In this document: positions 29,670 to 64,000 of the stretch, piece by piece
Layout: every line of letters starts with the position of its first letter
Numbering within the stretch: position 1 is the first letter of the stretch
Assembly: GCA_002104905.1 (NCBI GenBank)
Contig: MCFE01000177.1
Span: forward strand, 62,001-126,000
Direction of reading: 5' to 3'
Length of the DNA: 64,000 bases
Source: Basidiobolus meristosporus CBS 931.73
Lineage: Eukaryota; Fungi; Basidiobolomycota
Program-made: the position numbers and the translations under genes
Notes under the pieces: model-generated
What the model was told of the DNA's origin: nothing
What the model saw: only the letters and a program-made list of their open reading frames with translations
Database searches by the model: none

Positions 29670-30912
29670 TGTGGTAATGGAAAGTATTCCATTACTACAA
29701 TATCTCTGAACCAATATTGCACTCATTTCTTTATTTTGCTTTTTGCTATCGTAACACACAAGTGAAAGATCAAGAATTTCCAACTTTGAAGAACAAATGC
29801 TCCAGACCCTGACAAGCAATCCACCCAAGAATATTATGCCATATAGAACACGTAGTAGCCAACACATGTTTCAAATTACAGCTCATTTGAAGCAGTACTT
29901 AAGGAGTTATGACCAAAAGAGTCTAACTATTATATATACCATGCCTTATTGCTAGGATTACTATGGTGACTTTGATCACGTGTAACTTTCAAACCAGCCA
30001 ATCAAATCACGTAAAATTTTCACAGGTGCTGCGCCTATGTCCGATCTGGGCCACTGCAAAATTTTAGCTTTGTATCACGTGTATTGCTTGCGCAATCACC
30101 CAAAAACTTTGATCCTTCAAAATTTTCATATATATGACTTCCCCAGCTGAAAAATAAGGAGAGAGCATCTCTTTCCAGAATCTCCACACTACAATTACAA
30201 GTTTAAAGGTTATAAGACTTCCCCTGCATCACTTGCACTGTTGAGTATTTTGACTTTGATCAGTACTACATCAGTAAAGAGACTGCAAAGCTCACAAGAA
30301 TCCAATCTAAGTTCTACAAGAAACTACCACTTTTCTGTCGGGAAAGTCCCCTCTAAGAAGCCCCTTTACTCTAAAGACACCCCTTTAGATACCCCTTTAG
30401 TCTAAAGACCCCTTTAGAGACCCCTTTAAGAAACCCCTTTACTCTAAAGAAGCCCCTTTAGGCACCCCTTTAGTGTAAAGTCCACTTTAGAGACCACTAC
30501 AAGAAGCCCCTTTACTCTAAAGACACCCCTTTAGTCACCCCTTTAGGTCTAAAGACCCCTTTAGAGACTTCTACAACACACCCCTTTAGGTTAAAGGGGA
30601 GTTCAGAATTTCCATATTAGGAAATATTTTCTCAGAAAGGAAAGTGACTTCTAAATAAGGAAAAGTTACTATAAAAGTAAATAAGCCCATTAGTCAACAG
30701 AAGGTCAGAACACTGCTGTAGAAGTGATAAACACTGCCTACAGTATATTTTGAGCCCAAGATTGAGGAAATTAGTGAAAGTTATATCTTCTATTGGTATA
30801 TTAAACTCCCAATTAACTATTTCAGTATTAGCATACTGGAAGTTGTTGTATATTGTTGATTAGCCTCTACATTGTAGAACAAGCCCCAAACTAATCATAA
30901 TACAACACAACA
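29670..30912. repeat. Solo LTR of an unrelated family (1243 bp) inserted in the chromovirus RT
   Basis: TGT...ACA termini and 4-bp TSD GATT at 29666-29669 and 30913-30916. Excision restores [14 protein letters not shown]. Confidence 0.9.
30345..30600. repeat. Minisatellite with CCCCTTTA core and 73-bp higher-order unit (x3)
   Basis: aagaa(g/a)cccctttactctaaaga recurs at 30355, 30428 and 30501. There are 14 CCCC runs. Confidence 0.9.
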
Positions 30913-33799: not shown

Positions 33800-34630
33800 T
33801 TTCAAGCTAGGTAAAGTTAGTCCATTCTAGTTAGCCATTTACATGGATAATCTTTTTGCAGATTCCAATAACCAAGAAGTATCACAAGAAGCTAAATACA
33901 GCTTTTGTAAGGAGCTCAGCATCTCTGATACTCAAGGGCTTGGTTACTTCTTGGGGATACAGTTTTCCATACACTGAAACACCTAATCACACAGCTTAAG
34001 CCAGACCTGGTATTGTCAAGATATATTTCAGATGTACCAAATGATAATGTTTAGAAAGGCAGTCTCCATAGTGGAGACAAGCCTTAGACTGGTTGGTACT
34101 CAGCTAAATCCAGTAAGCTTGGTGCCATCTGTAAGCTTAGATTTCTCCAGCCACCTCCAAGCTGGTAGCTTGCTATACATCAAACCTAGAACATGCTGAG
34201 ATATTTCATATTCAATGGGAGTTGTCAACTGGTATATTCAGAGCCATGAATCAAATCATAGAGTAGTAGCTGAGTGAATCTGTAGGGAGAGTTTTAGAGA
34301 GAGAGGAAGTGATTGCAAGAACAAGTAGACTTTGTGGCTTTCACTTGATGGTTTTTAAATGTAAAAGTAGTATTTATACTTTTGCATGGTCTTGGCATAA
34401 CTAACATGTGAATATGAGTATATAGGTCCCAGAAGTATATGCGTAAAGTTTGGGGCTGCTTGGACAACTTTGAGAATCTTCATGTTCTAGGTACCTAGTG
34501 TTATGATGAAAACTTTCTAAGTAAACTTCAACAAGGAATATGGTCAGTATTTTCTAAGATTTGTAGGTAATAATCCAACTAACTGAATTTGGTGAATAAT
34601 CAGATGGAATTTTGAATTTTTATATCAGAA
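33800..34630. mobile_element. Old Copia B debris: RT fragment (+) and inverted LTR (~34281-34627, -)
   Basis: 34070-34140 resembles 59905-59980. 34281-34627 is a diverged reverse complement of the 349-bp Copia B LTR. Confidence 0.65.
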
Positions 34631-43472: not shown

Positions 43473-45152
43473 ATTAATTGGTGAAAACTGCGGCTTTTGT
43501 CACATGCTTCTCTGTCTCTGGCTTGGGTAGACTTTCTTTCCTTTTCTTTACCTCTAACACTGTCAGGTCCTTCACTGCTACTTTGCCAATTGTCAAGTAC
43601 TTTTCAAGCACGGATTTTGGCTTGGAAAGATTGGCCATACAAATTCACAAGGGCAACTCTTAGACCATGGACCTGGCCTATCAAAGATTAGGGCCGAACC
43701 TGTAGGCTCTGGTCAGTCCGGAACAGGCTCGCCTATGGATATTTGGTGCACTTAACGCGCTCACTCAACGCCTGGGAGAGCTAGGAACCATCTGTGATGG
43801 TGCAAAAGGGATGGCGGGTCAAGGGCAAAGTCTGTTCAATGTTCCAGGCGGGCATTTCGGGGATGGCTTATGCCTATCAGTGGAGACGAGTCACTTCTGG
43901 TCGCAAAAAACCTCTCATAACTCACCAGTCTCGAATTGACCTTTCCGTCCGATCGTTCCACTTGAGGTTTGGGTTAATCTTACAGTCAGAACTACCGTTC
44001 TGAGGAGCACTCGCCCGGTGCAACCACATCCACCATGCATGAGATGGGCATGTAACCCCCAAGAGTGTAGCTGATTCGCCTACTCAGATGTGGAGAATAG
44101 ACGACTTACAAGAGACGAGGTGGCCGCTAAATTCAACCGCCCAAGGGGATTCGAGGTGACTGGAGTTTATCGACAATGTGCAAGCGCCCAATGAGCATTT
44201 CAGGCTGCCAATTTATCCTTTGGTCGGCGTCATGGTGAAAATGCACGCGAAATCATCCTAGCATCTATAAACCACTCCCCAGCGTATATTTAGCATTTTC
44301 CTGGGTAACGATCAATCACTCACCATTGCCATATCTGGGGGGTAGGAGTGGATTGGCTCCAGCGTAGATCTCAGGAAAGTTTTCTACGGCAGCAGCCCAC
44401 CACCAATGACCTGGAGCAAACGGCGTGACGGGAACACGCGCTAAGAGGATTCCAGCCACAGTGGTGACCACCCCTGGAATCAACGGCTCAACTGCTGGAT
44501 TCTACAAAGTCGACTAGACAAGTAATATCAATGTGAAGTGCACGATAGACTGACCGGTTGAAAATGGTCAGCCAGTTGCTTGGTATGGCATCGGGACGGA
44601 TCATCCACGGCCAATTGCCCGCCACACTGGAAATTATTTTTAGACTTCAGGAGCCAACCCCATTCCGTTGCATGTGGTGTCCAGATTAAATTTAGGTTTT
44701 GGCTTTTGTGCCACTGACGGCGCATTAGCTGCAGCAGACACCGCGGTCAGTTAGTTGGTGGAATCAACCGGTCGAAAGACCTTGCGCATGCCAAATTTCT
44801 GGGCGGCAGGAGCTCCAACAAGCCCACGGCATCTGGGTTACAAGCGTACCTTCGGGTGGCGCCTGGTTTCCTCCAAGGTGGATTCATCCGCCGTATACGG
44901 GATTTCCCAGCGTGCCTATCTACCGGCGCTCACCTCGAATTGGGGAAGGTGGAAACCTTCCGAGCTGGATGTGTGCCCCGTACGCAGAGTTGTCTACGTT
45001 AGCGCCAGCACGCCTCGTGTCACCCTCGCATTACTCGAACTGTCAGCAATTACCAATTGATCAATCGCCACTCCGGCATTTCCATGATCTCATAGGCACT
45101 GGTTCCCTAAACTGGGTAATCCTCTTCTCTCCCCATAAGAGGTCATCTTCTT

Positions 45153-45158
45153 TATAAA
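45153..45158 (+). promoter_or_regulatory. Putative TATA box of the deacetylase gene
   Basis: TATAAA about 45 bp upstream of ATG 45202. Confidence 0.5.
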
Positions 45159-45201
45159 CCACGGCCCTCCCCATCATCTCTATGGTAATTCACATTTGAC
45201 A

Positions 45202-46518
45202 ATGAAATCAGCCCTTGCTTTACTCATCACCATGTTGGCTGCAGCATCCATTGAAGCTGTCCCCGAGCATGGCCGCTGTGGCTCCGGCCTGGGCTCCTGC
45301 GCACCCGGCTATTGCTGTAGTAAATGGGGCTACTGTGGCACCAGCACGATCTATTGCACTGTAGGCTGTCAAAGCAGTTTCGGCCGTTGCGATGACTCCC
45401 AGGCGACAACCACCACCCAGGCTACCTCAACATCGACCCCTTTGAAGCAGCGCAATGAGCAGTGTGGTTCCGGATTCGGCGCCTGCGCACCAGGCTTGTG
45501 TTGCAGCGAATGGGGCTGGTGTGGTTACTCACCCGACCATTGTACCGGTGGATGTCAAGCCCGGTTTGGCCAGTGTAGTCCCGACAAGCCTACAACCACC
45601 TCCACCTCCACCGTTAACCCAACCCCAGGAACACTGAGATATCTTGATCAGAAGTGTGGCTCCGGCGTGGGCTCTTGTGCGCCAGGCTTGTGCTGCAGTC
45701 AATGGGGATACTGTGGCTACACATCCGATCACTGTGCCACGGGTTGCCAAAAGGAGTTCGGTGGTTGCGACAAGAACAAGGAGGCTAAGGTTATTACCAA
45801 ATGCACTGCTCCGGGAACTTTCGCCATCACCTTTGACGATGGGCCCAGTGTGTTGACCTCAGGGTTACTCGACTACCTGGATAGAGTGAATGTCAAGGCC
45901 ACCTTCTTCGTTAACGGACACAACGAAAAGAACGCAGACACCGGAAACCCTATCTTAAGCATCTACGACTTGGCCGACGTCGTCAAGCGTGCCTACAAAT
46001 CCGGACATCAAATCTGCTCGCACACCTGGGCTCACACCGATCTCATCACGGTCAGTGAGTCGAGGGTTGTCTACGAAATGACCAAGCTAAACCACGCCTT
46101 CGCGAAGATCCTCAACAAGGTCCCTACCTGTATGAGACCCCCGTACGGCGACACTGATGGCCCGTCTCGCAAGATCCTCCAAAAGATGGGCTACATCGTT
46201 GTGAATTGGAATGTCGACCCTGTCGACTGGAACCCTGTGAATTCCATCGATGAGATGTACCAGGAGTACATAGACCAGACCAGCTCTGCCAACCCACGCT
46301 TTGGGAAATTCATCTCCCTGAACCATGACGTCTGGAATACCACGGCTGACTTCCGACCCGAGAATTATCCCAAAACCATCCCCCTCGCTCAGCGCGCCAT
46401 CGAATACCTCCTGAGCAGAGGATGGAAATTGGTCAACCTTGCTGACTGTTTGAGAAGCGGGCCTCTCTACCGCGAGCCCAATCCCTCCGATGACAGTTGT
46501 GGGAAGGCATGTATTTAG
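45202..46518 (+). CDS. Secreted chitin deacetylase (CE4/NodB) with three N-terminal CBM18 (hevein-like) modules, intronless
   Basis: Signal peptide MKSALALLITMLAAASIEA. Three CG....G.C..G.CCS.WG.CG.....C..GCQ..FG.C repeats with Thr-rich linkers. CE4 motifs TFDDGP, HTWAH, RPPYG, DPVDW and LNHD. True ATG is at 45202. Confidence 0.95.
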   Translation: MKSALALLITMLAAASIEAVPEHGRCGSGLGSCAPGYCCSKWGYCGTSTIYCTVGCQSSFGRCDDSQATTTTQATSTSTPLKQRNEQCGSGFGACAPGLCCSEWGWCGYSPDHCTGGCQARFGQCSPDKPTTTSTSTVNPTPGTLRYLDQKCGSGVGSCAPGLCCSQWGYCGYTSDHCATGCQKEFGGCDKNKEAKVITKCTAPGTFAITFDDGPSVLTSGLLDYLDRVNVKATFFVNGHNEKNADTGNPILSIYDLADVVKRAYKSGHQICSHTWAHTDLITVSESRVVYEMTKLNHAFAKILNKVPTCMRPPYGDTDGPSRKILQKMGYIVVNWNVDPVDWNPVNSIDEMYQEYIDQTSSANPRFGKFISLNHDVWNTTADFRPENYPKTIPLAQRAIEYLLSRGWKLVNLADCLRSGPLYREPNPSDDSCGKACI

Positions 46519-48847
46519 AGGGCTTGATTGGCATTGATTAACTGGTTGAAATAAACGGCCTATTCTTACGGTCCTGGACAGAAGACCTACACTTAGACCC
46601 AGGTATTTGATTGGCTGGTGGCTTGAATTGGGAATGGGCTACTATCGTCCGTCCCCTGTTTGGCGAACCTATGTATAGATGGTTGATGGGAATTGATCGA
46701 GCAGTCTGCCAATTCATCCTTGAAAAATAGCCGCGGTCGAAGCTTGGTAACCAATTGATTTCTTGCATCCGCGATGCTTCTTTGGGTTGGTGTGATATCG
46801 GTCGCGCAGCAAGATGATGAATCGTTGAGAACGCTCTATCCGGGTCGCAATACCAAGGCCACTTGCACTTGGTAATCAAGGCACTTGTTTTCTTGAATGG
46901 AATGGAATCCCATATGATGAAATCCCGATCCAAGTGGCTTAGAAGCTAGTACCAGCGGACTACGTGGACTGTACGTACTGACGGTGTAGATCAGTGAAAA
47001 TCCCACGAAAGCAGCGGTCTCTGAGTATTCATCATGGCCACACCTATTGATGTATATTAGAAGTTATATGACCTAATCTCATACCTGGCCAGTAGGTTGG
47101 AAACTCATTTGGCAAGAGATTTTCCCTCAAGACGTCGCGAGTAGATGGAAACCCCCCACGCTCTGCACGCATCTTTCCACCATAAATCCCGATTTCATCG
47201 GCCAGGGTTCGAACATCGTTCCTTTATGTTGGCTCAATAGCCCAGCGGGGGAAAATCCCCCCAATCGCTTCAGGTAAAAATCATGCTTTTTCGATGTTTC
47301 CCGATCACACCCAGGTTCCCACCATTTCCGTTTGGTTTACGTATTGTGTTGGTGAGTAGTAGCTACTACGCAATAGTATTCAAGGTGTATAGCCAGAATA
47401 GGTCGATCAAGCGGGTAGTGGTGGCTGCTTTCACTTGAGCATACTCTGGTTGGCTTTTTGTAGATCTTCGTGGAATGATTACATGGTTTATCACGTACCG
47501 ACACCTTTCCCATACGGATGCTGCCGAATCGATTATAGGTCAACGGGGATTTTCATGAAGATACAGCTGTCAGATATGCTGGTCAGTTTGGTCTCTTGAA
47601 TGGTGCCAGATAGAGTGGCTCTTAGATATCGGATACACATCTCGAGGTGGCCCAATCATGGATTGGTGTGTTCCAACTGTTACGGACCTACAACGATGAA
47701 AGCGAGCCTCTGAGTCTATTTGTGGAGGTCATGTCGTGCCGGTCATCAGAGGAGACTTTACTACTGGATTGAGCCATGCTGTGTTAGCCCTCATCTTCAA
47801 TGGTTGTGCTGAGAAAGAGTAAACACTCAGTGCTATTTGGTGTGATGGTATCTGGGCCGATTTGAAACCTCTAGCATAACCACCCTATGCCTGGGAATCC
47901 ACTGATTCCTCGACCTTCTTCTAGGTGGGGTGACAACTGTGGAAAGGAGAATACTTCTGTAGGAGCACACATTGCATACGCCCTGATCGCTCGTCACCAC
48001 CGATATATGGAAGAGACCGACTGTCGTACTTCTGATGGCGGTCAGAATCTCCAAGCCTCGTCCACGTAATAAAGCTGGAATAGGCTGGCCTCAGTAGGGG
48101 GATGACCAGTATTATGTAGCTTTTGAATGATGGCCCGAGAGAAAATAGGCTAGACAACTTGGCGGCCATCGGCAATGCGTGTCCATAGCTCGAAATCGGC
48201 ATGTCCATGTCACAGTTACCCTTCAGCAGCAATCCCTGCTGGGTTGAGTATATATCATCCACGACAATCACCTGAGGAGATGGATGTCCTAATCCAGCGA
48301 GGCGGTCGGTCAGAGAGGCACCCCCGCCTCCCAAAAGGCGCACCCCAGACTGGTTCGGTTGGTATATTTCAAGCCCAGCGCATCTAAGTTAAAAATATCC
48401 CGTAGCCGGGGTTGGAGATACCCACCATTCGACAGCATTGGTCGCGAGGGATGGGAGTTTCTCGAATATCGCGAGCTGATTGGTGTGCTCTAGCAGTCCG
48501 AAGTTGGTGTAAAGAGCCAATTGCATGAGGAGGAAGTCGCGCGGGCTCAATGGAATTGGGGATACACAAGAGCGATCAGTCGAATCGTCATCTCATCCGT
48601 AGAGGGGTACATTCCCATGCTCACAGTAACCTACGTGGAACAGACCCGTGACGTCTGAACCCTCTGAATCGGCCGTCATTTTCTGATACCACGAATGTTC
48701 CTTTAGAGGTTCCCGGCAGGAGATTGGGGGCGGACGAGCTGACGAACGACCAGCTCGTGGAAACTGCCAGCGAAAGGGCTATTTTTAAGCGAGGTCGGCA
48801 TGAAGGGGAGCGTTACCCGAAGATTGCGGCCTCGTACTGGGAGAGCT

Positions 48848-48854
48848 ATAAATG
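48848..48854 (+). promoter_or_regulatory. Putative TATA box
   Basis: TATAAAT about 55 bp upstream of ATG 48908. Confidence 0.45.
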
Positions 48855-48907
48855 AAGCCAGGTGTCCACATTACTTCCGCCAACCAACCCCCCCCCCCCA
48901 CTTTGAA

Positions 48908-49704
48908 ATGATCCTCCAATCCATTCTAGCCATCTTTTCGATCGGCCTGTACCCGTTGTTCGCACACGCAGACCTCTATATCACCAGCCCGGTGAACTCC
49001 ACCTGGTCGGTGAATTCCGAGCACTATATCTCCTGGTACGTCAAATAAATCACCCCTCGCCATTCGACCCGGGCTAATCAAGTGTCTTAGGTTCGCCAGT
49101 GGGAATCAGTCCCATACCAACACATCGCTGACCCTGATGAACGGCCCACAGCTCAATCTTTTCCCCATCCTGGAGATTTCCCCGGCAGTCTCGGTCTCCA
49201 CTGGCAAGTTCCTATGGAAGGTTCCCGGGGACTTGGCCATGAGCGACACGTATGTCATCCGGGCGGGAAGCGGGGACCAGGCGTCCTACAGCACGTACTT
49301 CACCATTCAGTCCCAGCAAGCCCCCGACAACAGCTCACTCATTCTGACCAGCCCATCGGGCGGTGCATGGGCCCGAAATACCGATCGCAACATCACATGG
49401 TGGGGAATATCGCTGAACACATCTCCGATGTACGACTTACTAACCAGTGACTTCCTCTTCCTCGTTCCCACTCATTAGGAACACACGCGAAGGCGCGCAA
49501 CTGCCGCCCGTGATCAAGCTGGATTTGATGTCAGGAGATCCGACCAACCTGACCATCGCCAAACCCATCGCAGATCAGGTCAACACTACCGCTTTGTGGT
49601 TTCCATGGACGGTGCCTACCGACGTGGTGCCTGGGAACTATGTTGTCATGGCCACGGCCAATCAGACGGCCTCGTATAGTTCGTACTTCCAGATCACCGA
49701 GTAA
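48908..49704 (+). CDS. Secreted protein of two tandem Kre9/KNH-like (Ser/Thr-rich GPI-family N-terminal) domains; exons 48908-49035, 49091-49399, 49479-49704 (220 aa)
   Basis: Signal peptide. GT-AG introns of 55 and 79 bp with GCTAAT / ACTAAC branch sites. Spliced length 663 nt stays in frame. Two repeats of ITSP...W......I.W ... L.LM.G ... W.VP......Y.......SYS.YF.I. Family assignment is from pattern recognition. Confidence 0.8.
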
Positions 49705-50086
49705 AGACACCAACACCCCCTCTACCGATCAATCCATTCCAAATAAACAACCATGATTCAACCCCACCATGTCCAAGTATCGACTGGTTGCATAGCCACC
49801 ATCCCTCGAAATTGTCATGCAAACCCCATGATTACCTTGGGTGTCGATGCATTCCGTACCCACCCTTTGTACCACTGTTGCAACCGTTGCACGAATGGTG
49901 AGTACACTCAGGGTCCGTGGGCCTCTGGCAATCAGGGCGCCACTTCGACCCCGTCATTTCACTTCAACTGGTCCCACCCAAACGTACAGCTTGGGGGAAA
50001 AGCACACCAACGCGCACATGACATCAAACTCATTATTTATTACATTTTGCAAGGTGAATCCGGCGAACCCTCTAATCGACTCCATC

Positions 50087-52356
50087 TTAGATCCCTCTTT
50101 CCACGAATGACTGCAGGATACCTTCGACAGTGGCTGGGTACTCTCTGAGCTCGACCGAGTCGCCGACTAGCACCGTGTTGGCCTGGACGAACAGCTTACG
50201 GGGCTGCTTGTGAGAGATGACGATGTCACGGAGGGACTTCCACTCGTCGGGGACCCGGGTCATCTCAGCATACAACGCGGAGCCGGCCTCGAAGTCGGCC
50301 GTAGCCTTGTAGATCTGGAGCTTCTGGAGGAATGCGTGCATCGCCGGCATTCCCACCGAGTGAATCTTGCTGCGATCCAGGGTGATCACGGCGTCGGTAT
50401 TGTCTGCGTTGCGCTCGATCTTCACGAAGTCCTCCCCAGCCTCGAGGAGCACGCGCATGATGGCGTATCGGGCCATCATGTGGGCTTGGCCCCATTTCTT
50501 CGCGGTAGGATCGTAGAACTCCAAGCCGAGTAGACCGGCACGGGCCATGGACAACCATCCGATGTACATGATGTCGTCGGCAAGTCCGACGTCGTGGCTA
50601 GAGTCGGTGTGGCCGAACACCTCAAGCGCCTCCTTGTCGGTGGAAAGGAAGAGGGCGACCGATTCGGCACGGCACTCCTCGTATGACGAGGAGATGTTTT
50701 TGAACACGGATCCCCATGTTTGGCCTGGCTTGTACCAACTGGTGATGGGCTTCTTGGTGACCGGGGACACAGGAGGATTGCTCTGATCGAAGTTGAATTT
50801 CCCAGGCTCCTGCTCGGCGAGCAACTTGCCGGAGCCGTGGCCGAGCAACTCGTGGAGACCCACTTGAACCTCGAACGCGGGGCCCTTAAGTTTCTCGAAG
50901 AGGGCACGGTCTTGTTCGTTCAAGAATGGGTACTTCTCGCTAGGGGCCTTGGCGTTCAGGATGTTACCAAGACTAACATTCTTGAAGCCATAGGTCTGTC
51001 GGATGTCGTCATAGTTGGGGATGTTGATGCCTAAATCACCCCGGAGACTATTAATATCTCCAAACATGCGAGGCGGATTAGTGGCCACTTACCGGCAGGA
51101 ATGCCCCCGGTGGCAAAGGACATCACCTCCAAGGATGTGAAATCAGGCTTGTTGAACTTGTCCTTCTCGAACTCGACTCCCCTGGGAACAGAAACGGTAC
51201 TCAGTCAGCGGAGAGGGGTTGGGGAGAGATGGACGGCAGACACTTACCAAGGCAACTTCGAGATGAATTTCTCGGCGTTGTCGACGAGGACACCGAATTT
51301 CTTGGTGCGATCCTTATTCACCATAGCAACGAAGCCTTCCCACTCGGCACGGATACCAGCGGGGTCGCGATAGGTCTCGATGAAGCCAATGTTAGACTCC
51401 ACGGTAGGCCCGATGTCCTTGATCCAGAACTTCTGGGACTCCTTGTGTGCCTCAATGGAGCCAGTGGTGAAGCTCTCTGCGTACTTCTCCAACATCTGGC
51501 GCTGGTTGTCGTTGGCAGCATACTTGATAGCGGCCTGGATTTCGTCGGCGACCTTACGCATGGTCTCGTGGTAATCACCGTAGGTGATCTTCACGGACTT
51601 GCCCTCGGGAGTCTTGTGGACTTGGGGCTCCTTTTGCTGCGCGGAGGCGATCCTCACCTCAAACTCTGAGTCGGAAATCTTGAACAATCTACAAAGCCGC
51701 GGTTAGCACGGTATTCAGAATGCCCTCCTCCATCCCCAACCAAAGGCCTACCTGGTGTTGAGAGAGTCCACATCGATGGACTCAAGGTATCTCTGCACCT
51801 CCAGAATGTCCTTCTTCGCCACATTCTCCGAGTAGTAGTTCGACACGTGTCCGTCGTCCACGTATCCAAGTAAGTTCTTCGACTCGGGGGTGACGGAGTA
51901 GATGTTCTGTCGGACGGCCTCGAACAGCTCAGTCACCTTCTGGTTGGCCTTGGCTTTCACAATGGCCTCCAGGTCAGCTTCGGAGACGCGAGGGATAAAT
52001 TTGGTGTCGCCAAAGGATTTGTAGTTGGCCAGGTTGGAGAGGAATTGGCCCGCGTACTGAAGCCAGTGCTGGAAGGCCTCCTCACCGACTCCACTGGCAG
52101 CACGCAACTTCTCCAAATCCACCAGCTTTCCAGTGCTCTCTTCCTTGAACAAGGACACGATGAAGTCGAAGATCGTCTCGCTCTCCTTGGTTGTCTGGTT
52201 AAGCAACGCACGAGCGCCGTACCAACTGGCTCTGCTGATGTGGTGGGCATAGTGCTTCTCTTGTTCGTTCAAAAGCTCAAAGTGAGGGCGAATCTCCAGC
52301 TGGCAGACTGGGGCGTTTAGGTCAGCGTAGTATTGAGATTCCTTACTTGTGGTCAT
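50087..52356 (-). CDS. DPP3: Dipeptidyl peptidase III (M49); exons 52356-51752, 51688-51248, 51181-51093, 51030-50087 (692 aa)
   Basis: Catalytic HELLGH and EECRAE motifs. GIPAG|INIPNYDDIRQ..GFKNVSLGN is restored by splicing. Three GT-AG introns of 63, 66 and 62 bp. Spliced length 2079 nt. Confidence 0.97.
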
Positions 52357-54899
52357 GTTGGGTGGAGACAAAGGGAGGTTGTAAGTGGCTCAGTTGCGAA
52401 GACACTCGCTTATATCCAGGCCCATGACGAAATCTCTTACGAATGATGAAACCTAACTGTGCTACACTAATCAATGTTGGAAGACGAGGTTCTATTGGCC
52501 AAAAATGGCAAGCCTCGATTGTTCGCATCGCTTCGTAGGTTGGATTGAATGCTGAGGAGCCCGCAACCCAACCCTGGGGTTGGTGAAGATGGCTCCATTG
52601 ATTCCAAATTCCCATGCATCCTTCGCATCCTACCAACATGGTAATACCATTGGCCAAAAATAGCGTTTTTTCGCGCTTGGTTTAGCTCCAATCATCGAGA
52701 TCAGCTTCAGCAAAGGCCCGTTCTGGGATTAGCTTACGGAATTGTCTAATCATTTCTCCCATGTTTTGATCGCAATACCTGTCAATTCGAGGGGCATTTG
52801 TGAGGACTATCCCCTGATTCCTGGCGACAGACATAGTCATCTGGAAAGTGCAATTATCGTCGGTTTCACCTCATTTGATCTAGTTTATGCGTGCTACCGT
52901 GATGCTGAACCTAACAATACCAAACTTGACTTGATTCGCACTTTGACATTTGATATTGACGCTGTAACAATTGCACCACCTTTGTCTCGCTAAATGAAGT
53001 CCAGTGGGTTGCTGATGATGGTGCACACTCGGTTGAATTGATTATCCTTGCGCCCAAGCAGCCTACTGATGTAAAGGGTATTATTCAGATGACCTTCTCC
53101 AGAAGAAGCAGAGGAAGCGTGAAAATGGGTGTCTTCATAATCATTGCTGTGATACTACGCTGACTACGAAGCTCCTAGCCAAGAATGTGATTCTCATCGA
53201 TCATCGGATGGCTCCACGCTAGCTGCCATAGGGTTGGATGCTGGTCGGGTTAGCAGTTCAACGCGCCCAGCTACATGGCACCTACTTGGGTCTAGTTGGT
53301 TGCTTATGACTGGGCAGGTGATCAACTACGCTTTCACTGGTATTTTGACTGGGAAGATTTCGACAACTGTATCCAAAGATGGAGTTTTTGGGATTCTTCG
53401 GGAAACCGTTTCAATGCTTATTCTTATTTCCGAAAAGTTATGCGGAGTATGGAATGTCACCAATTCTCCACCATTCTTTAGAGTAGCACAGGTGGAGACT
53501 GTTCAGTGCTGTGGAATATGGCATAAGAAGTAACGGCTGCGTGACACGGCGGCTAAATGATTTTCCGCTGAAGATAGGTCAAAGCGAAAAAGGTGTTCTT
53601 TGGTTGCTGAAATCAATTACATAATTAACAATATTAGTAATAGACTCTAGGTATGTTATTAATGCTCTGTGCTTATATCTGGCCAATTAGCAAAAATCAC
53701 CCGGATTTTAATCACGCTATATATTTTCTTACGTAATGGATTATCTGCAATATACAATTGGTAATATCTCAAATATGCTCCAGGGTTTTCAAATATTGGA
53801 TAGTTTCTTCACATTGCATGCCCTCTATATGTGCTACAGTTAGTTGATTCAACTTCAGGATTCCTCATTTCATCCAAACTTCTACTTGGCCAAGTCATGG
53901 ATATTACCAACTATAATACAAGAACTTATCCATAAAATGCTTACTTGTGCAGATTATTTAATTATGTAGGTGTAATCCCAGAGAGGATATACTTCTACTA
54001 CAACATGATAGGCATTTGAGGCTGCAACAGATGCTTGCATGGCATTGAGTTGTGGAAATCTAGTGATTGTACTTCTATACTATTATCACTTATGTTGGTT
54101 AGTTTGTAGCTCATGCACATACCATTTGCAGCTTATATTCATTGTTGGAAATAGCTTAGATTAGCAGCAATGATGCTCAATAGGTGATGCATATCAGATA
54201 TTTAGAAATTATCCAACAATTATTGCAAATTTCTCAAATATACTTGAATGCTCACCAAACACCATCATTAAGACTTTGTCTTACTAATCTTAGATACTTC
54301 ATATGACATCTTTTGTTGGAATTAATTTTAGATATATCAGTAGTATAGTTAGCACCTTGATGTGGGCACTCTCAAAGTGGCCCATGAAGCCCTAAGCTAT
54401 GTATATATATTCTTGTGGCCTTCTGGGTATATTCCGCATGCTTGTATTGCCAAGAGCAGTTATACCACATTTATTTTGAGTATATCATCAAATGAAAACC
54501 TCAGAGTGTACTTGTTCTCCATATCACACTTAATTCCTCCAAAATTTTGCCCCTAGCTATGAGCATTGAGCTGTGACTTCCTACATTGCCTATTACTGCT
54601 TCAACTGGTATACTTCCAACTACTCAAAAGCTGGCTATATATTCCTATGAGAAATTATTGTGATGGTCCCTTCAAGGGGACATCTCAAAGCTCAATTCCC
54701 ATGACTCAGAGTTATTGATGGTGCAGGTCATTGTGCAAGAGCTGCTGAAACAAGAATTGCACCTCAGATTTCACTAAAAACATGGTATAAAATTTTCATC
54801 ACAACAATTCCTAAGTTGCAATTAATTGGTTCTCTTTCATTTCTCTCACATACTAATCCTGGACACTGATTCACCTACAATTGTGTACATTGAATGACT

Positions 54900-55400
54900 A
54901 TTGCCTCTGTCTCACACTACTACTTTCCACATCAGCTGGTACTATTACTTTTCATGCAAAGAAATTAGTAAAATTCTGTGAATCTTCCATTTTAACTAAA
55001 TTGTAAATTGTGCTGACCTTTTAAGTCCCTATACCCAACACTACTTTTAAGCCCAATCTCACACTCAATTATTGGCTCCATTGAAAGTTTCTGTTCAACA
55101 TGTGTTTCTGCTGCAACATTGTTGCCCATGGCTTTGGCATGAACTCTGTATATGTAAGCCATTATTTGTTCACTGGTTCCCATATATGATATGCTTTAGC
55201 TGGCACTGCAAGATCTATCACTTCATATGCTGGTTAGTGTAATAAATGCTTGCAATACTCAAGTGTGTTTTCTTTTGCACTGCTGTTGAAGAAGCACTGC
55301 AACCAATAGGTGATCCTATTGATGCTCCACAATTCCACTGTAGGAACTGTAATTGTTCCCAATTTCTTGACATTATTGCTTTGCCAGTCAGTGAGATCTC
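54900..55400 (-). mobile_element. Further decayed copy of the CACTA-associated second ORF
   Basis: 55200-55400 resembles 2500-2760 and 21500-21590. Confidence 0.45.
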
Positions 55401-55747
55401 TGTTGTAAAATAGATAATTCTACTTGAATATTTGCTTAACTTAGTCACTTAGATCATTATGTGAAAATCTTAGTGAATACTGACAAAATTCCTTGTTAGG
55501 ACTTACATGGAATATTTTCACCAAATATCAGGTACCCAGAACACAAAAATTTGATAAGTTGGCCAGTTAGCCCCAAGCTTTGCACACATGTTATTGGGAT
55601 ATTCCTCAATCTATTTTACATGTTTGTTGTGCCAAAATTATGAAAAAGTACAAGTACCACTTTTATATTCAATAAATCATCAAGTGAACACCACAAAATC
55701 TACTAGTTCTCCCAATCATTGCTAATATCTCCAAGACTCTTACAACA
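55401..55747 (+). repeat. Copia B LTR with decayed PBS/leader, at a deletion junction
   Basis: tgttgtaaaa...ttacaaca followed by ggctataatccccaagctgtcactc, then an abrupt switch to transposase sequence. Confidence 0.85.
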
Positions 55748-55772
55748 GGCTATAATCCCCAAGCTGTCACTC

Positions 55773-56326
55773 AATAATGGAGGCTTTGAGTACTTACTTC
55801 AACTTCCTGCCTACTTCATATTGGGATGCAATCTACCATGTGCATGGTACATATGGACAACCATCATGCAGCTGGCAACATATAACCCAGAGACTATCCT
55901 GATACCTGCATGTGTTAATAGTTGCCTGGCATGCATATCCAAAAGTGCTACACATGGAAGGTATCCTACTTATTAGGAGCCCACTTCCTCAGAGGAAAAA
56001 ATTTTTCACATTCTGGTTGGATTCCAAGGATACCCCATCTAAAGAAGCTGATGCAGTCCAACTAATATTGTGAAGCTATAAAAAAATGTACTCATCATCA
56101 ATCAGACCCAAACATTTTGCTCAACAATAAAGCAAGGGCTATTTTGAAGGTTTGTGTTGCCATGCCTTGCCTTGGTACTGATGGTATCTCATTTACCAAG
56201 TACTCTGCTGGCAAATCTTGTTGGCCACTGATCCTCATCAACCCAAATCTGCTGCCAGTCTCACAGTATCAGAGCAGAAGTGCAATAGTAGTCTCACTGA
56301 TATCTGTTCCTAAGTCACCTTCTATG
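55773..56326 (+). pseudogene. Second CACTA/EnSpm-type transposase fragment
   Basis: Translates to CLGTDGISFTKYSAGKSCWPLILINPNLLPVSQYQSRSAIVVSLISVPKSPS (family pattern TDG...S.WP....NLPP..R...PGPK.P). Paralogous to 24420-24720 plus 25460-25710. Confidence 0.75.
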
Positions 56327-59300
56327 TGTTGTAAAAATTTGTATTTCCACCTAAATATTCACCTAACTTAGTCACTTAGATCATCACCTTCCAATCCTAG
56401 AGAATACTGACCAAATTCCTTGTCGGGATTTACTTAGAATATTTTCACCAAAATACCAGGTACCCAGAACATGAAAATTCTCAAAGTTGTCCAAACAGCC
56501 CCAAACTTTGCACACATGTTCTTGGGACCTTCCTTAGCCTATTCTACGTGTTTGTTATGCCAAGACCAGGTAAAAGTATAAACACTACTTTTACATTCAA
56601 TAAATCATTAAGTGAAAACCACATAATCTACTTGTCCTCCCAATCACTTCCAATATCTCCAAGACTCTTACAACAGATTATGAGCCCCAAGCTGTCACTC
56701 TCTGCAATGTCTACTACTGCTATTACTGGAATTTTTCCCTCTGCTGAAAAGTTGGATGGCTCTAACTACCAAGTGTGGAAGGTGAAGATGAAGATGCTGC
56801 TACAAGAAAGAGGCCTTTGGGATATTGTCATGGGAGAAGAATGCCCTCCTAAAAACGTGGGAGAGGAAGCCTTAAAGTACCAGAAGAAAGAACAAAGTGC
56901 CTTTAACTGCATTTGCCTTAATGTCAAGGACAAATTGCTAATTCAATGCTCAAGAGCAAAAACGGCAAAGAATGCCTGGAAGGCATTAGAAGACACCTAC
57001 CAGTCATGTTCAGCTGCCAAGAAAATGTATCTGAGAAGAAAATTCTTTACTACAAAGATGCTGCCAGGAGAAGAAATGAAAAATCTAATTAACAGAATTA
57101 CCCTGCTGGTAGATGAGATGGACTCTGTGGGCGTACCAACTACTGATGAGGATGTGATAGTTACCATCCTGAATAGCCTGACAGACAAGTTTCAGGGCCT
57201 TGTATCAGCCCTAGAGTCCAGAACTGAAGATTTGACCTTAAATTACGTATATGGAAGGCTCCTGGATGAAGAATTAAGAAAATCAAGCGCCAATAAGAAG
57301 GAAGAAGAAAATGCTTTAATAAGCAATGATAACCAACAAAGGAGGTACCCAAGACCCTACAAAGGCAACAACAACCTATTTTGCAACTACTGCAAAAGGA
57401 AAGGACACACATCGGACCGGTGTTTCAAAAAGAGAGATTATCAGCAAAAGAAGCCTGAATATGGAAATGCTGCAACAACTGAAGATAGACTATTCATATC
57501 TGCACTAAATATGACCACAAACAAGGATTCTCAGATGTGGTATATTGACTCTGGAGCTTCTCAACACTTTACACACCAAAAAGAACTTTTTACCCAATAT
57601 CAAGAAATTCCAATTAAGAAGGTTTTCATGGGTGACAATGGAACACTTGATGCAGTTGGAGAAGGAACTATCTAAGTAAACCTTAGAAGCAGTGAAGGAA
57701 GCCATACACTGACCTTTAAAGAAGTACTCTATGTACCAGAAATAGCCAAGAACCTACTCTCTGTAAGCAAGGCCACAGCAGAAGGACTCAGTTTCAGTTT
57801 TGACAATTCTGGATGCAGGATCACTGATCAAAATGGTGCCCATATTGCTTTGGGCATCAGAGATCAGAATCTATACAAGTTGACTTATATTCCATCATAT
57901 CTGGAAGCCAATATAAGTAACTTAAATGAAGAAACACCAATGCTTTGGCACAGGAGATTTGGACACATCAATTTTGATTATTTGTGTAAAATGATCAAAG
58001 ATCAGCTAATTTCTGGAGTGAAAATTGATCCCCCAGCTAATTTGGAGCACTGTGAAGCCTGCATATATGGGAAACAAGCCAGACAACCGTTCAAGAGCTC
58101 TGGGTTAATCAAAACTAAGAAAAAATTAGATCTAATTCACTCAGATCTGTGTGGACCTATGCAAAATTTATCCTTAGGCGGGATGAAGTATTTAATCACT
58201 TTTATTGATGATTATACAATATACACATGGGTCTACTTCATGGAGAGAAAGGAAGAAGCTCTGTCTAAGTTCAGGGAGTTTAAAGCCATGGTGGAGAGAG
58301 AAACTGGTGAAAAAATCAAGAAAATACGCTCTGACAATGGTGGAGAATATACCTCAAAACTCTTCATCCACTTCTGCAAAATTCATGGGATAAAGCAAGA
58401 GACTACTGTACCATACTCCCCACAGCAAAATGGAGTAGCAGAACGAGCTAACAGATCAATAATTGATATGGCAAGATCTATGATCCATGATCAAAAATTA
58501 TCCTATGATTTTTGGGTGGAATCAGTTGCCACTGCTGTATACCTTAAAAATAGGAGTTATAACAGAATACTTTGTGATTCTACTCCATTTGAAGCATGGT
58601 ATGGATACAGACCAAGTGCAGAACATCTAAGAATATTTGGGTGTACAGCATATGCCAAAAAACTGGCCAGAAATCAGTCAAAATTTGAGCCAAAAAGTGT
58701 AAAATGCATATTTTTGGGCTACTGCAATGAGAGTAAGGCATACAGACTCTACAATACCAAAGCAAAGAAGCTGATCAAGTCCAGGGATGTGTTGTTTGAT
58801 GAAAATTTAAAATTTTCACAAAAAATGACATCAGATGATGACAAAAATTTGATCTCAAGTCCACCAATTGTCAGGATTGAATCAGAGCAAAACAATGAAA
58901 ATTTTTTCACTCCAGAGGACTCTACAACCGTGGTTCAGCCAGAATCAGTGCCCAGGAATATTCCAGAAGTGATCATTCCAGTATCAAATGCCCGGAGACC
59001 AAATTGGACAAGAAATAGCCCAAATTACTATATCAATGAGGGTACAAACTTAGCCTATGCCTATTCAGTCCATATTGATGAGCCCCAGACTGTAAAAGAG
59101 GCCCTAAATAGCCCTCAGACAAAGTTTTGGAGATCTGCAATGACTGAGGAATATCAGGCCCTGATGGAAAATTAAACTTGGGACTTAGTCAAATTACCAA
59201 TCAACCGAAAATCAATTGGATGCAGATGGGTCTTCAAGACAAAATACAAGGCTGATGGTACAATTGAAAGATACAAAGCAAGACTTGTGGCCAAAGGATA

Positions 59301-61011
59301 CTCTCAAACAAAAGGACTTGACTATACTGAGACCTTTGCACCGGTAGCCAAGTTTAATTCCATCAGATTAATATTGGCTATTGCAGCCAAATATAAGTTT
59401 TTTATTCATCAAATGGATGTAAAAACTGCATTTTTGAATGGAGAACTTGAAGAGGATGTGTATATGAACCAGCCTGATGGGTTTGTTGACCAAGATAACC
59501 CCCATTTGGTCTGCAAGCTTAAAAAGTCACTATATGGTCTCAAACAATCACCGAGAGCCTGGAATTGCAAGATAGATTCTTATTTGGAATCTTTGAGTTT
59601 CAAAAGGAGTAATGCTGACTATAGTATATACTATAAGCCAGATAGAGCAAATCCAGTTCTATTAGCTCTATATGTGGATGATCTTATTATAGCCGCCAAT
59701 AACCTAGAAACATTGGAAGAGACTAAATCCAGCCTATCTAAGGAGTTCAAGATGTCCGATCTAGGAGAACTTAGTTACTACTTAGGGATTAAGTTCTCCA
59801 TAGACAGAAGTACCCAGACTATTACCCTAAGCCAATTCAAGTATATTCAAGATATACTAAAGAAGTACAAAATGGAAGACTGTAAGCCGGCAGCTACCCC
59901 AATGGAGACAAACCTTAACTTGGTCAAAACTCAACCAAATCAAGAGAGCTTGGTGCCATCTGAAAGCCCTGACTTTCCTTATCAATCTATGGTCGGCAGT
60001 CTGATGTATATCATGCTTGGAACACGTCCAGATATCTCATATTCAGTGGGAGTTGTCAGCCAACATAATCAGAATTATGGATCTGATCATATTGCAGCAG
60101 TTAAGCGGATTTTTAGATACCTACAAGGAACTGCTGATATCTGCTTAAGATACACTTATAATGATTCAGAACAGGATCTTGTGGGATACTCTGATGCTGA
60201 TTGGGGACGAAATTTGGAAGACAGAAGATCCACCACAGGATACACCTTTCTTTACTGTAAAGGAGCAATTTCATGGAATTCAAGAAAGCAACCAACCGTA
60301 GCACTTTCTACTACAGAGGCAGAGTATATGGCAGCCTGTGAAGCTACAAAAGAAGCAATGTGGTTAAGAAAACTCTTTACAGATTTAGGCCTATGTCAAA
60401 AAACGCCTATTACTTTATTTCAAGATAATCAAGGATGTATACAATTAGGTAGAAATCCAACTTTTCATGCTAGAACCAAGCACATAGATATTAGACATCA
60501 TTTCATACGTGAAGCTATAGAGAGTACCTTAGTTAGCTTAGTTTACTGTCCTACAGATGAAATGATTGCAGACATATTTACCAAACCATTAGCTAGAGAC
60601 AAGTTTGAATATCTTAGGTCAAAATTAGGACTAGTCAGTATGAGCATTTAGCTGAGTGGGAGTGTTGTAAAAATTTGTATTTCCACCTAAATATTCACCT
60701 AACTTAGTCACTTAGATCATCACCTTCAAATCCTAGAGAATACTGACCAAATTCCTTGTCGGGATTTACTTAGAATATTTTCACCAAAATACCAGGTACC
60801 CAGAACATGAAAATTCTCAAAGTTGTCCAAACAGCCCCAAACTTTGCACACATGTTCTTGGGACCTTCCTTAACCTATTCTACGTGTTTGTAATGCCAAG
60901 ACCAGGTAAAAGTATAAATACCACTTTTACATTCAATAAATCATTAAGTGAAAACCACATAATCTACTTGTTCTCCCAATCACTTCCAATATCTCCAAGA
61001 CTCATACAACA
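56327..61011 (+). mobile_element. Ty1/Copia family B, near-intact element
   Basis: 349-bp LTRs 56327-56675 and 60663-61011 (7 differences). PBS gattatgagcccc. PPT gagtgggag. Flanks CTATG / GAAAA do not form a TSD. Confidence 0.96.
56707..60651 (+). pseudogene. Copia B gag-pol, single frame with two premature TAA stops (57673-57675, 59173-59175)
   Basis: ORFs 56548, 57850 and 59287 share one frame. Motifs CNYCKRKGHTSDRC, WYIDSGAS, HSDLCGP, SDNGGEY, LYVDD and ADIFTK. Confidence 0.95.
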
Positions 61012-61950
61012 GAAAATTCCAGTATTAGCAATTGTAGACATTGCAAAGAGTGACAGTGTGGGGCTCATAACCTGATGTAAAAGCCTTGGAGATATAGGTT
61101 TAGGAAGGTCCCAAGAAAATGGGTGCAAAGTTTGGGGCTATTTGGACAACTTGGAGGATATTGTGATATGGGTACCTGGTATTTTGGTGAAAATATTCCA
61201 AGTAAATCCTAACAAGAAATTTGGTCAGTGTTCTCTAAGACTTTTAGATAATGATCTAAGTGACCAAGTTAGATGAATAATTAGGCGGAATGACAATTAT
61301 TTATAACACAGGCCTCAGAAGTAATGAAGACCAATACAAACTTCCCCTTGAGGAAGTACTCCATATACCAGATGTAACCAAATACCTCCTATCTGTAAGC
61401 AAGGCCACAGGAGAAGAATTCTAACTCAGTTTTGACAATGTGAATGCATTACCAACAATCAAAATGGTGCCCATACATGCTCTGGGTGCCAGTGATCAGA
61501 GTCTATACCAGCTAAATTATATTCCATTATATCTGGCAGTCAATATAAGCAGCTTAAATGAACAACTACCAATGCCTTGGCACAGGTGATTCTGACACCT
61601 CAATCTGATCTGTTTGAGCAAAATGGCCAGATATTGGCTAACTTCCAAAGCTGTATATCTTAAAGGTAGGAGTTATTGCAGAATACTTTATGATTCTACT
61701 CCATTGAGGCATGGTATGGATGTAAACCAAGTGCAGTGCACCCAAGAATATTTGGTTGCATGGCATATTCCAAGAAGCTGCCCAGAAATCAGTCTAAATT
61801 TGGGCCCGGGAGTGTAAGATGCTTTTTTTTTTAGGGCAACTGCAATGAGAGTAAAGCATGCAGACTCTACAATACCAAAGAAAAGAAGCTGATCAAGCTC
61901 AGGGATGTGTTGTTTGATGAATATTCAAAACTTCACAAAAAGTGACATAA
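61012..61950. mobile_element. Copia B debris: inverted leader, PBS and internally deleted LTR (61012-61308, -), then scrambled pol fragments (+)
   Basis: 61061-61072 is the reverse complement of GGTTATGAGCCC. 61073-61308 is a reversed LTR. 61320-61950 matches pieces of 57680-58820. Confidence 0.85.
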
Positions 61951-61968
61951 GCCAGAAGATTCAAGTGT

Positions 61969-61974
61969 TTTATT
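61969..61974 (-). terminator. Putative polyadenylation signal AATAAA of the stand-alone gag gene
   Basis: AATAAA on the minus strand about 300 nt after the stop codon, at the edge of the CpG-rich segment. Confidence 0.4.
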
Positions 61975-62273
61975 TCGCTCACCACATACAACATCACCTA
62001 TTGTGAGTACCACTCGTTGGGTGAGCCTACTTCAATTGCATTCACGTAAGTTGAGATCATTTGGATAAAATACTGCGGTTGGTAAAGCGGGGGAATTTCG
62101 ATTTTGGGCTTGAGGCTTCCGTGTCAACTCATGTCATCAGTGTCTGCAGAGGTAGCCCCTGTTGTGGGTAGTCGTCGACTTGGGGTGGTTTTCTCATACG
62201 CGACCAGCAATTTGATTCAATGCTTAGGCAGATTGCATGTATGTACTTCAGGTGGTGTTGTCGATCATCTCAG

Positions 62274-63050
62274 TTACTCGGCCATTGTCGAATTATCAGT
62301 AGTATCTTTGGTGGGGACCAGCTTAAAATATGGGCAATTCTGGATGATATGATCCGTTCTCCGGCATCCCAAGCAGCGGCGTGGTTGTCTGAAAGGGGGT
62401 TTCCAGGCTGTGTTCTCGTTTGGTAAAGTCTTCCGAAGTATCTCTGCCACCTCCACTTCCATTTTATTCACCCTCTTGGTCAGGGCCTCAATTTCCAAGT
62501 ACCGGGGTTTCGGGGTAGTGGTGGCTAAGCTGAAATGCCTTCCATTTCTTATCATGTCATATTGCTCTTCCTCCTCGGCATAAGCAATAGCTTCATCCAT
62601 AGTTGCGGGTTTACATCTGCGCACCTCTAATCTAATCCTTGGATTAAGTACACCCAAAAAGATCTGGACCCTCTCTTGCTCATCATTATATTCTAGTTGA
62701 GAGAGTAGCCGCACTACTTGTGTGGCAACCTCCGATACTGCTTTCTCATCCTGTCGTAGAGAGCGAAGAGTTTGTCTCCAAGTATCGATTCGGGCGGCGG
62801 TAACATATCTCTCCTTGAATCGTTCTTTAAAGGTCGGCCAGTCCGTTAGCTCCGATTCGCGGGCTTCAAACCAGATAGCTGCCGAGTCTCTCATATAGGC
62901 TCCGGCAATCATTGGTAGCTCCTCAAATCTCCAATGGTTGACACGTTGACCGATCTCGCATTGTTTCAGCCAGCCTATAGGGTCCTCTTCGACATTCCCA
63001 GAGAAATTTCGAACTGTAAACAGACATATTCCATTGGTCGTTGTAGTCAT
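62274..63050 (-). CDS. Stand-alone Ty3/Gypsy-type Gag (capsid plus CCHC zinc knuckle), 258 aa, candidate domesticated gene
   Basis: Pattern FSG...EDP..WL / A..YM.D.A..W / W..FK.RF / L..LRQ / F...L...IR.EV....P.TMDEAI..A, and C-terminal CLGCRRTDHIIQNC (CX2CX4HX4C). Uninterrupted ORF, CpG-rich. Confidence 0.85.
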   Translation of the reverse strand: MTTTTNGICLFTVRNFSGNVEEDPIGWLKQCEIGQRVNHWRFEELPMIAGAYMRDSAAIWFEARESELTDWPTFKERFKERYVTAARIDTWRQTLRSLRQDEKAVSEVATQVVRLLSQLEYNDEQERVQIFLGVLNPRIRLEVRRCKPATMDEAIAYAEEEEQYDMIRNGRHFSLATTTPKPRYLEIEALTKRVNKMEVEVAEILRKTLPNENTAWKPPFRQPRRCLGCRRTDHIIQNCPYFKLVPTKDTTDNSTMAE

Positions 63051-63265
63051 AGTAGGCAGAAATCCTTCGTTTTAGGTAGGCTTACTTGATAAAGGGCACC
63101 GGCTGCAGGCAGCAAATCTGCAATCACTAATAAGCAGATGTTCTCACTAGAACGTCAGGGTACAGATCGTGAGGCTAGTGGTAGATTCGGGGAAGTAAGA
63201 AGGAATTATCTCTGGCACTACTTCCTGGGGGCTATATTCTGCCCTTCGTTCATTCATCTTGTGGT

Positions 63266-63273
63266 TATTTATA
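63266..63273 (-). promoter_or_regulatory. Putative TATA box (TATAAATA) upstream of the stand-alone gag
   Basis: About 215 bp upstream of ATG 63050 on the minus strand. Confidence 0.45.
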
Positions 63274-64000
63274 GTTGCGCCGAGTTGTGGTTTCACTGAT
63301 GCACTTCAGATCTGGTATTCGTTTCAGCAATTAGCAGCTCATTGCAGCAGCAATAAGAAGCACAATTGAAGCATATCACTCCCTGACAAAGCAGATAACC
63401 GGGAAGCGCTTACGTAGATTTGAAGTGACGACAGAAAAGTGTTTCTCAAGATGTTGTGACCGGTACTGCAGAAATACTCTCAAGTCAATATTCGACTCTG
63501 CTGACTCACCATTCGCTTTCCAGCCCAGAGGTACTCTTCCATGTTGTGCCGGCTATCTTGATGTGATTCAAAGTACATACAGTTTCATACAATCATTTGT
63601 GATTTCTCATCTCTTGATCCATGCCTGATTCCTGCCCACATACTATGGCTTTGGCTAAATCTTGCTTTCTTTTAGGTTTTAGACTGGAATGATTTCACGT
63701 GAAATAGCTGCTCTGATGAGATGCAGATATGTAGACTGACCATGATGACAGGCCAGGAAAGAAGGGAACAAGCGTCCTTTGTCCTAGATTGCCTGATAGC
63801 GGTAGGATTCGTGTATTGTTGTTTTCTCGGTGAGCATTTACCAGGGCGAGGGTTTCTGGCTTTACCGATATCCCCCGGAGTCACTTTCAGTGGATAGTTT
63901 AAGGGCTAGGCGAACTGTGGGGATTGTAACAGCAAAAAATGGTTACGCTTGTCAATTACGCCATTGGCTGAACGATGTTCTAGATAAATCGTTACGGTCG

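Follow-up and report, generated by a model that had tools for sequence, protein, structure and literature searches.

We describe an intact, free-standing gag gene near the end of a 64,000-nucleotide stretch of the genome of Basidiobolus meristosporus CBS 931.73 (assembly GCA_002104905.1, contig MCFE01000177.1, positions 62,001 to 126,000 of the forward strand), called the window here, to which all coordinates refer. The gene is a single-exon open reading frame (ORF) of 258 amino acids on the minus strand (62274..63050), and it encodes the complete Gag of a divergent Ty3/Gypsy lineage with known relatives in 'zygomycete' fungi. This gag is solitary, as no pol, pair of long terminal repeats (LTRs), primer binding site (PBS) or polypurine tract (PPT) is in view. 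With about even confidence, we read it as a gag-only remnant, either left over or derived by deletion, of a Gypsy element, low-copy or newly arrived, which escaped the CpG erosion seen in the other transposable elements (TEs) of the window. The fungus could have adopted the gene, but the evidence shows nothing beyond an unusually well-preserved leftover.

The ORF list and Pfam identify the ORF as gag. Two Pfam families match it above their curated cut-offs, Retrotrans_gag (PF03732; 43.2 bits, E-value 4.7e-11, cut-off 24.1) and Ty3_capsid (PF19259; 30.7 bits, 2.6e-7, cut-off 29.1). Pattern matching finds a single CCHC zinc knuckle, CX2CX4HX4C, at residues 226-239 (62334..62375, minus strand), and the stop codon follows 19 residues past it. 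The zf-CCHC model of Pfam reported no match on this protein at E<=1; the knuckle aligns with that of the closest relative found, P0001. In a 37-sequence family alignment, all invariant and near-invariant columns are retained, and the ORF spans the distance from the natural gag start to the natural gag stop. There is an A at position -3 of the ATG. An initial annotation of this DNA had claimed an uninterrupted ORF of this length, Gypsy-type capsid signatures, the knuckle and the A at -3, and each of these was found, with the frame open from ATG to TAA. A spliced gene model was rejected, since an in-frame stop lies 7 codons 5' of the ATG and the acceptor is not convincing. A chance ORF was also rejected, given the family and fold matches.

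An AlphaFold2 model, built from the 37-sequence alignment, has a mean predicted local distance difference test (pLDDT) of 86.9, which rises to about 97-98 over residues 11-170. These residues form the capsid domain (62541..63020, minus strand), which is all-helical with an N-lobe and a C-lobe. In the secondary structure of the model, a long spacer helix (residues 183-208; 62427..62504, minus strand) separates capsid and knuckle. Foldseek matches the model to the capsids of Arc, dArc1, dArc2, PNMA2, PEG10 and Ty3, with E-values from 1e-4 to 3e-2 for those of the animal genes, and the template modelling (TM) score, normalized to the target, is 0.66-0.67 for the dArc and Ty3 capsids. The Arc capsid is also retrieved from the sequence alone (phmmer against PDB, 8.5e-4). 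The comparison with Ty3 and Arc capsids that had been suggested with the initial annotation therefore returned matches to both, and the protein has a confidently predicted two-lobed capsid fold of the Arc/dArc/PNMA2/Ty3 type. If translated, this Gag would be expected to self-assemble through its capsid lobes and to bind nucleic acid through its knuckle.

Relatives of the protein are distant. A word-index protein search (candidates of 142-451 amino acids) gave no match, and a scan of metagenome contigs gave no close kin. A HMMER scan of 1.84 billion representatives yielded 737 matches, the best with 31-34% identity and none above 34% over a long stretch, and contained no cluster of the window Gag itself. 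The named matches are Gag or Gag-pol proteins of Ty3/Gypsy elements from Calcarisporiella, Mucor, Absidia, Umbelopsis and Smittium. As a control, a word search of a 5.8-billion-cluster collection with the gag of a Gypsy element resident in the window (family A) found no close relative either. The absence of an orthologue is therefore uninformative in either direction, and the control suggests that TE proteins of Basidiobolus are poorly represented in public protein sets. P0001 is 30% identical to the window Gag over 240 residues and lies on a 2.1-kb contig (L002). Its gag stops 15 residues past the knuckle. Pol, which includes a DSGAG protease, follows in the -1 frame; this frame is already open shortly before gag terminates, and about 500 nt separate the gag stop from the start of the protease domain. 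Another relative (L004) has adjacent ORFs for gag, then for protease, reverse transcriptase and RNase H, and then for integrase. Because gag is a separate ORF that ends about 15 residues past the knuckle in these two elements, the boundaries of the window ORF may simply be ancestral TE boundaries, and an end just past the knuckle is the ordinary layout of the lineage and not in itself a sign of domestication. Three other gag-like sequences are recorded here as side observations. Umbelopsis isabellina (GCA_027595865.1; L003, 2178-2957) has a 259-residue gag-like gene, 28% identical to the window Gag over the capsid, whose next gene (687 amino acids) is without a Pfam domain and around which there are no direct repeats of at least 40 nt in 10 kb; it is apparently another stand-alone gag in a zygomycete genome. 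A Drosera rotundifolia protein of 1182 residues (P0004) carries about ten tandem Retrotrans_gag domains; either its gene model is odd or gag is arrayed there in tandem. A gag-like protein of 376 residues (P0017) is assigned to a metagenome-assembled genome of Bacteroidetes and probably stems from eukaryotic DNA that contaminates this bin.

The remaining parts of a retroelement are missing around the gene. The downstream flank (61967..62273, minus strand), studied by translation, tblastn, CpG counts and a search for PPTs, is only about 310-320 nt long and ends at a truncated Copia fragment at 61951-61966. In the 322 nt 3' of the gag stop each of the three frames contains 4-6 stops, which equals random expectation. 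Where the continuation or the downstream DNA of Gypsy relatives was checked, coding sequence follows directly past the knuckle, as pre-protease pol or as a Gag-pol linker. No similarity to pol was found in 61000-64000, where six pol-bearing relatives and the start of the L002 pol match the gag ORF only (tblastn). The initial annotation had pointed to the lack of a D[S/T]G motif and of pol in about 300 nt downstream. The lack of both is real, although this distance is by itself too short to exclude a truncated pol, because the protease of the relative starts about 500 nt past its gag stop; the closed frames are the stronger fact. No purine run of at least 8 nt occurs in the 322 nt. No TGG, the only type of primer site considered (canonical TGG-type), lies within 460 nt 5' of the ATG, and no repeat is common to the two flanks (61800-64000 searched, with 950 nt of the window remaining upstream of gag), so that the earlier claims of no PBS and no shared flank repeat stand. 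A search for tRNA genes found none. The upstream flank (63051..64000, minus strand), which runs off the end of the window, was covered by CpG counts, self-comparison, the ORF list and Rfam. It is non-coding and unique within the window, with no ORF with family matches and no Rfam match above threshold; one sub-threshold match to a small nucleolar RNA was rejected. An autonomous or complete LTR retrotransposon would have pol adjacent to gag, a PBS and a PPT; none of these is in view here. Within the limits of the window, the locus has what is expected of a co-opted gag, an intact gag-derived ORF apparently without pol and LTRs.

The contrast between the ORF and its downstream flank bears on a further possibility, that of an old neutral relic which lies in unmethylated DNA and has stayed open by chance. 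Identity to the nearest relatives does not exceed 31-34%, and sister copies are absent from view, both in keeping with such a relic. However, 258 gag codons without any stop stand beside 107 codons with 4-6 stops per frame, which is unexpected under equal neutral decay. All conserved family residues are kept and the structure model is very confident, and we regard a neutral relic as very improbable.

The CpG content sets this block apart from its surroundings. The gag ORF has exactly 35 CpG in 777 bp, with a CpG observed/expected ratio (o/e) of 0.81 and a TpG/CpA ratio of 0.98, that is, no excess; o/e is 0.68 in the upstream and 0.75 in the downstream flank. All other TEs in the window have an o/e of 0.3 or less, whereas gag and both flanks are in the host-like state. 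The coding span of Copia-1 (56548-60651, 4.1 kb) contains 26 CpG, in agreement with the earlier estimate that the ORF has about 35 CpG, comparable to the youngest Copia ORF. Two CpG states are thus found in the window, a host island at 43.5-53.5 kb with an o/e of 0.7-1.0 and about 50 kb of Copia and Gypsy sequence at 0.3 or less, and this landscape seems to imply efficient, long-standing CpG methylation of repeats in Basidiobolus. Copia-1 (56326-61013) is a full-length Copia element with 352-bp LTRs that are 98% identical and a coding region split into three ORFs. Both of its LTRs have a CpG o/e of 0.2 and 0 of the 7 LTR mismatches are in a CpG dinucleotide; its depletion was therefore inherited from a master copy and did not arise after insertion. 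Resident TE families are thus depleted by inheritance, even in young copies. The gag block, in turn, is TE-derived sequence without inherited CpG depletion or TpG/CpA excess, and therefore did not spend a long time as a silenced repeat here. As side observations, the TE sequence at 1-43500 and 53600-61951 has a TpG/CpA excess of 1.2-1.7 with razor-sharp borders to host DNA, and the same two-state CpG pattern is found at another B. meristosporus locus (L001, 5000-8000).

Codon usage points the other way. The GC content at third codon positions (GC3) of the gag ORF is 0.48, as against 0.65-0.78 in the four host coding segments of the window and 0.33-0.51 in the TE ORFs. Its host-versus-TE codon log-likelihood, which leaves out CpG-affected codons, is -0.28 and within the TE range. 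The TE-like GC3 and log-likelihood count for a TE leftover. However, this argument is only suggestive, because host genes of B. meristosporus span GC3 values of 0.48-0.63 and so reach down to that of gag. The initial annotation had concluded that the ORF shares the sequence regime of the host genes; this holds for its CpG content and its lack of TpG/CpA excess, but not for its codon usage.

The block is joined to Copia debris. Self-BLAST and alignments place the junction between the CpG-depleted debris and the CpG-normal block at 61951..61966, where Copia homology ends in the middle of the integrase, at the equivalent of 58834 in Copia-1. The CpG switch coincides with this structural junction, and the CpG-normal block sets in where the debris is broken off. 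The debris (61013..61951, plus strand; self-BLAST and CpG counts) is old and rearranged; its identity to Copia-1 is 77-87%, and it has 3 CpG per kb and a CpG o/e of 0.08. It opens with an LTR/leader piece in inverted orientation (61013-61309), behind which lie two internal pieces on the plus strand, both with internal deletions. Since a CpG-normal block abuts truncated Copia debris inside a sea of TEs, the locus has undergone a past rearrangement. The block might also be the end of a mobile element nested in the old Copia integrase, gag-only and non-autonomous or rearranged, with its 5' LTR beyond 64000. Its start at, or within 15 nt of, the mid-integrase end of the Copia homology is what a nested insertion would produce, and, if the LTR were long and measured about 1.1 kb or more together with the leader, a matching repeat could be hidden beyond the 950 nt that the window holds upstream of gag. 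However, there is no TG/CA terminus at the junction end of the block, and the missing PPT, flank repeat and TGG site also speak against a nested element, which we consider improbable.

We therefore return to a gag-only leftover of a Gypsy element. We propose that a low-copy or recent element bypassed the CpG-eroding silencing, presumably 5-methylcytosine, that marks the other TEs of the window, and that gag would be still fresh and intact because of this; it would not yet be a host gene. The lack of a long methylated past is in keeping with a family that the silencing system has met recently or has not noticed. Several points weigh against this reading. The 322 nt downstream are closed in all frames where the Gypsy relatives checked are coding. 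A plain deletion requires a break no more than about 10 nt from the gag stop, which is possible but a coincidence; if pol instead decayed and gag was retained, this would point to selection. Neither an LTR nor a PBS or PPT was found near gag, and no second gag copy was found in the window, in protein collections or in metagenome contigs. Host GC3 values as low as 0.48 in B. meristosporus weaken the codon argument. Base rates heavily favour TE leftovers, while the CpG state and the closure of the frames downstream argue in the opposite direction.

The same observations lead to a second interpretation, in which gag was co-opted as a single-exon host gene of Basidiobolus with its own promoter and poly(A) signal, selection keeps it unmethylated and intact, and its product forms capsid-like particles or interferes with Gypsy assembly. 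We hold this to be rather unlikely. In its favour are an ORF intact from natural start to natural stop with all family-conserved residues, non-coding CpG-normal DNA on both sides with downstream frames closed where the Gypsy relatives checked encode pol, the absence of LTR, PBS and PPT, and the precedent of gag co-option in fungi (Crtg12-14, see below). The CpG o/e of 0.81 without TpG/CpA excess also agrees with it, given that even a Copia with 98%-identical LTRs is down at about 0.2 in this genome. A possible promoter element, TATAAATA, was found by motif search at 63266..63273 (minus strand), 216-223 nt 5' of the ATG, close to the roughly 215 bp first reported; it is a common motif, with 11 occurrences in the entire window, counting both strands. 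It lies 3' of every candidate TGG site, and a transcript that starts from it would therefore lack a canonical PBS. An AATAAA (61969..61974, minus strand; motif search) is located 300 nt 3' of the gag stop, as the initial annotation had put it. However, the window has roughly one such hexamer per 2.1 kb of each strand, and this copy is 3-18 nt from the Copia junction; because the motif is so common, it is weak evidence. The TE-like codon usage and GC3, compared with the host genes of the window, also argue against co-option, as does a very low base rate, since a genome may have thousands of gag-bearing TE copies and very few co-opted genes. No orthologue or close relative was found, which, after the Gypsy-A gag control, does not count either way. 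Thus, of the original proposal of a fungal capsid-derived host gene, a complete Gypsy-type Gag with a capsid fold, solitary, CpG-retaining and followed by non-coding DNA, is retained, but the status as a host gene is not supported; its codon usage is TE-like and a stop shortly past the knuckle is normal for Gypsy relatives. The functions proposed with it, RNA-binding particles and restriction of family A, are speculation.

Comparison with known systems places the protein among the Gags of Ty3/Gypsy elements (Metaviridae), such as the Ty3 capsid (PDB 6R24) and those of Gypsy elements of Mucoromycota and Zoopagomycota. It shares with them the Pfam families, the two-lobed helical capsid and one CCHC knuckle near the C-terminus, and with the relatives on L002 and L004 the end of the ORF shortly past that knuckle. 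It differs from these elements in having no pol behind it and no LTR, PBS or PPT in view, from all known Gags in being at most 34% identical to any of them, and from the resident TEs in retaining CpG. The co-opted animal gags Arc/dArc1, PNMA2, RTL/SIRH and PEG10 are likewise stand-alone Ty3/Gypsy-derived capsid genes without LTRs and give the best structural matches. However, what defines those animal genes is synteny of their orthologues, purifying selection and expression, and sequence identity to their proteins is just 16-21%. The likeness to Arc-type genes reflects shared Ty3/Gypsy ancestry, not orthology. In Saccharomyces, Ty1 encodes the Gag-derived restriction factors p22 and p18, of which p22 is an N-truncated form of Gag that a promoter inside the full Ty1 gives rise to. 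Like p22 and p18, a Gag-only product could poison the assembly of related particles, but the window gag differs from p22 in being a full-length Gag that stands alone. Co-assembly with the Gypsy family-A Gag of the window is doubtful, because the two are just 24% identical (gag at 753-1193, minus strand), a low identity that the initial annotation had also noted. The ORF of this family-A gag (717-1352, minus strand) has 211 amino acids and a CpG o/e of 0.03. Co-option of gag is itself known in fungi, where the single-copy genes Crtg12-14 are gag-derived (Wang & Han 2021, PMC8321522). Crtg12 and Crtg13 come from Ty1/Copia and Crtg14 from Bel-Pao, and all are found in Dikarya and conserved across families (PMC8321522); the window gag, in contrast, is derived from Ty3/Gypsy and belongs to a fungus that diverged early, and no orthologue of it is known.

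The 64-kb window contains a single gag copy of this kind. The host gene island (43500-53600) includes a gene for a secreted chitin deacetylase with three CBM18 modules (45202-46518, plus strand), 82% identical to a protein of B. ranarum and 79% to one of B. meristosporus. Synteny was searched through paralogues of this gene at four B. meristosporus loci (L001 and L005-L007), which are not syntenic; they share with the window just the chitin deacetylase gene (78% nucleotide identity) and have no DPP3 neighbour and no match to gag or its flanks. The DPP3-like gene of the island (dipeptidyl-peptidase III; 50087-52371, minus strand), named by eye, consists of three ORF pieces beside the TE block. 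Within the TE sea, the region 27000-34000 has a strongly negative GC skew, from -0.17 to -0.25.

As no more than a leftover, the gene would be a minor curiosity. It would represent a Gypsy Gag lineage that is very divergent, with 34% identity at most to anything known, and was spared the CpG erosion of its neighbours, and it would inform on how selectively Basidiobolus marks its repeats. Wider consequences would follow if Basidiobolus had co-opted this Ty3/Gypsy gag in a lineage-specific event, for which we see perhaps half the prospects of a leftover. Such a co-option would extend the domestication of capsid genes (Arc, PNMA, RTL) to early-diverging fungi and to fungal Ty3/Gypsy sources. As the three published fungal cases are from Copia and Bel-Pao in Dikarya (PMC8321522), it would be the first co-option of a Ty3/Gypsy-derived gag to be reported among fungi, and also the first from an early-diverging one. 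With its full capsid and zinc knuckle, the product could make RNA-carrying particles or act against retroelements, and the gene would then offer a simple, single-exon model for the role of a free-standing capsid gene in a coenocytic fungus.

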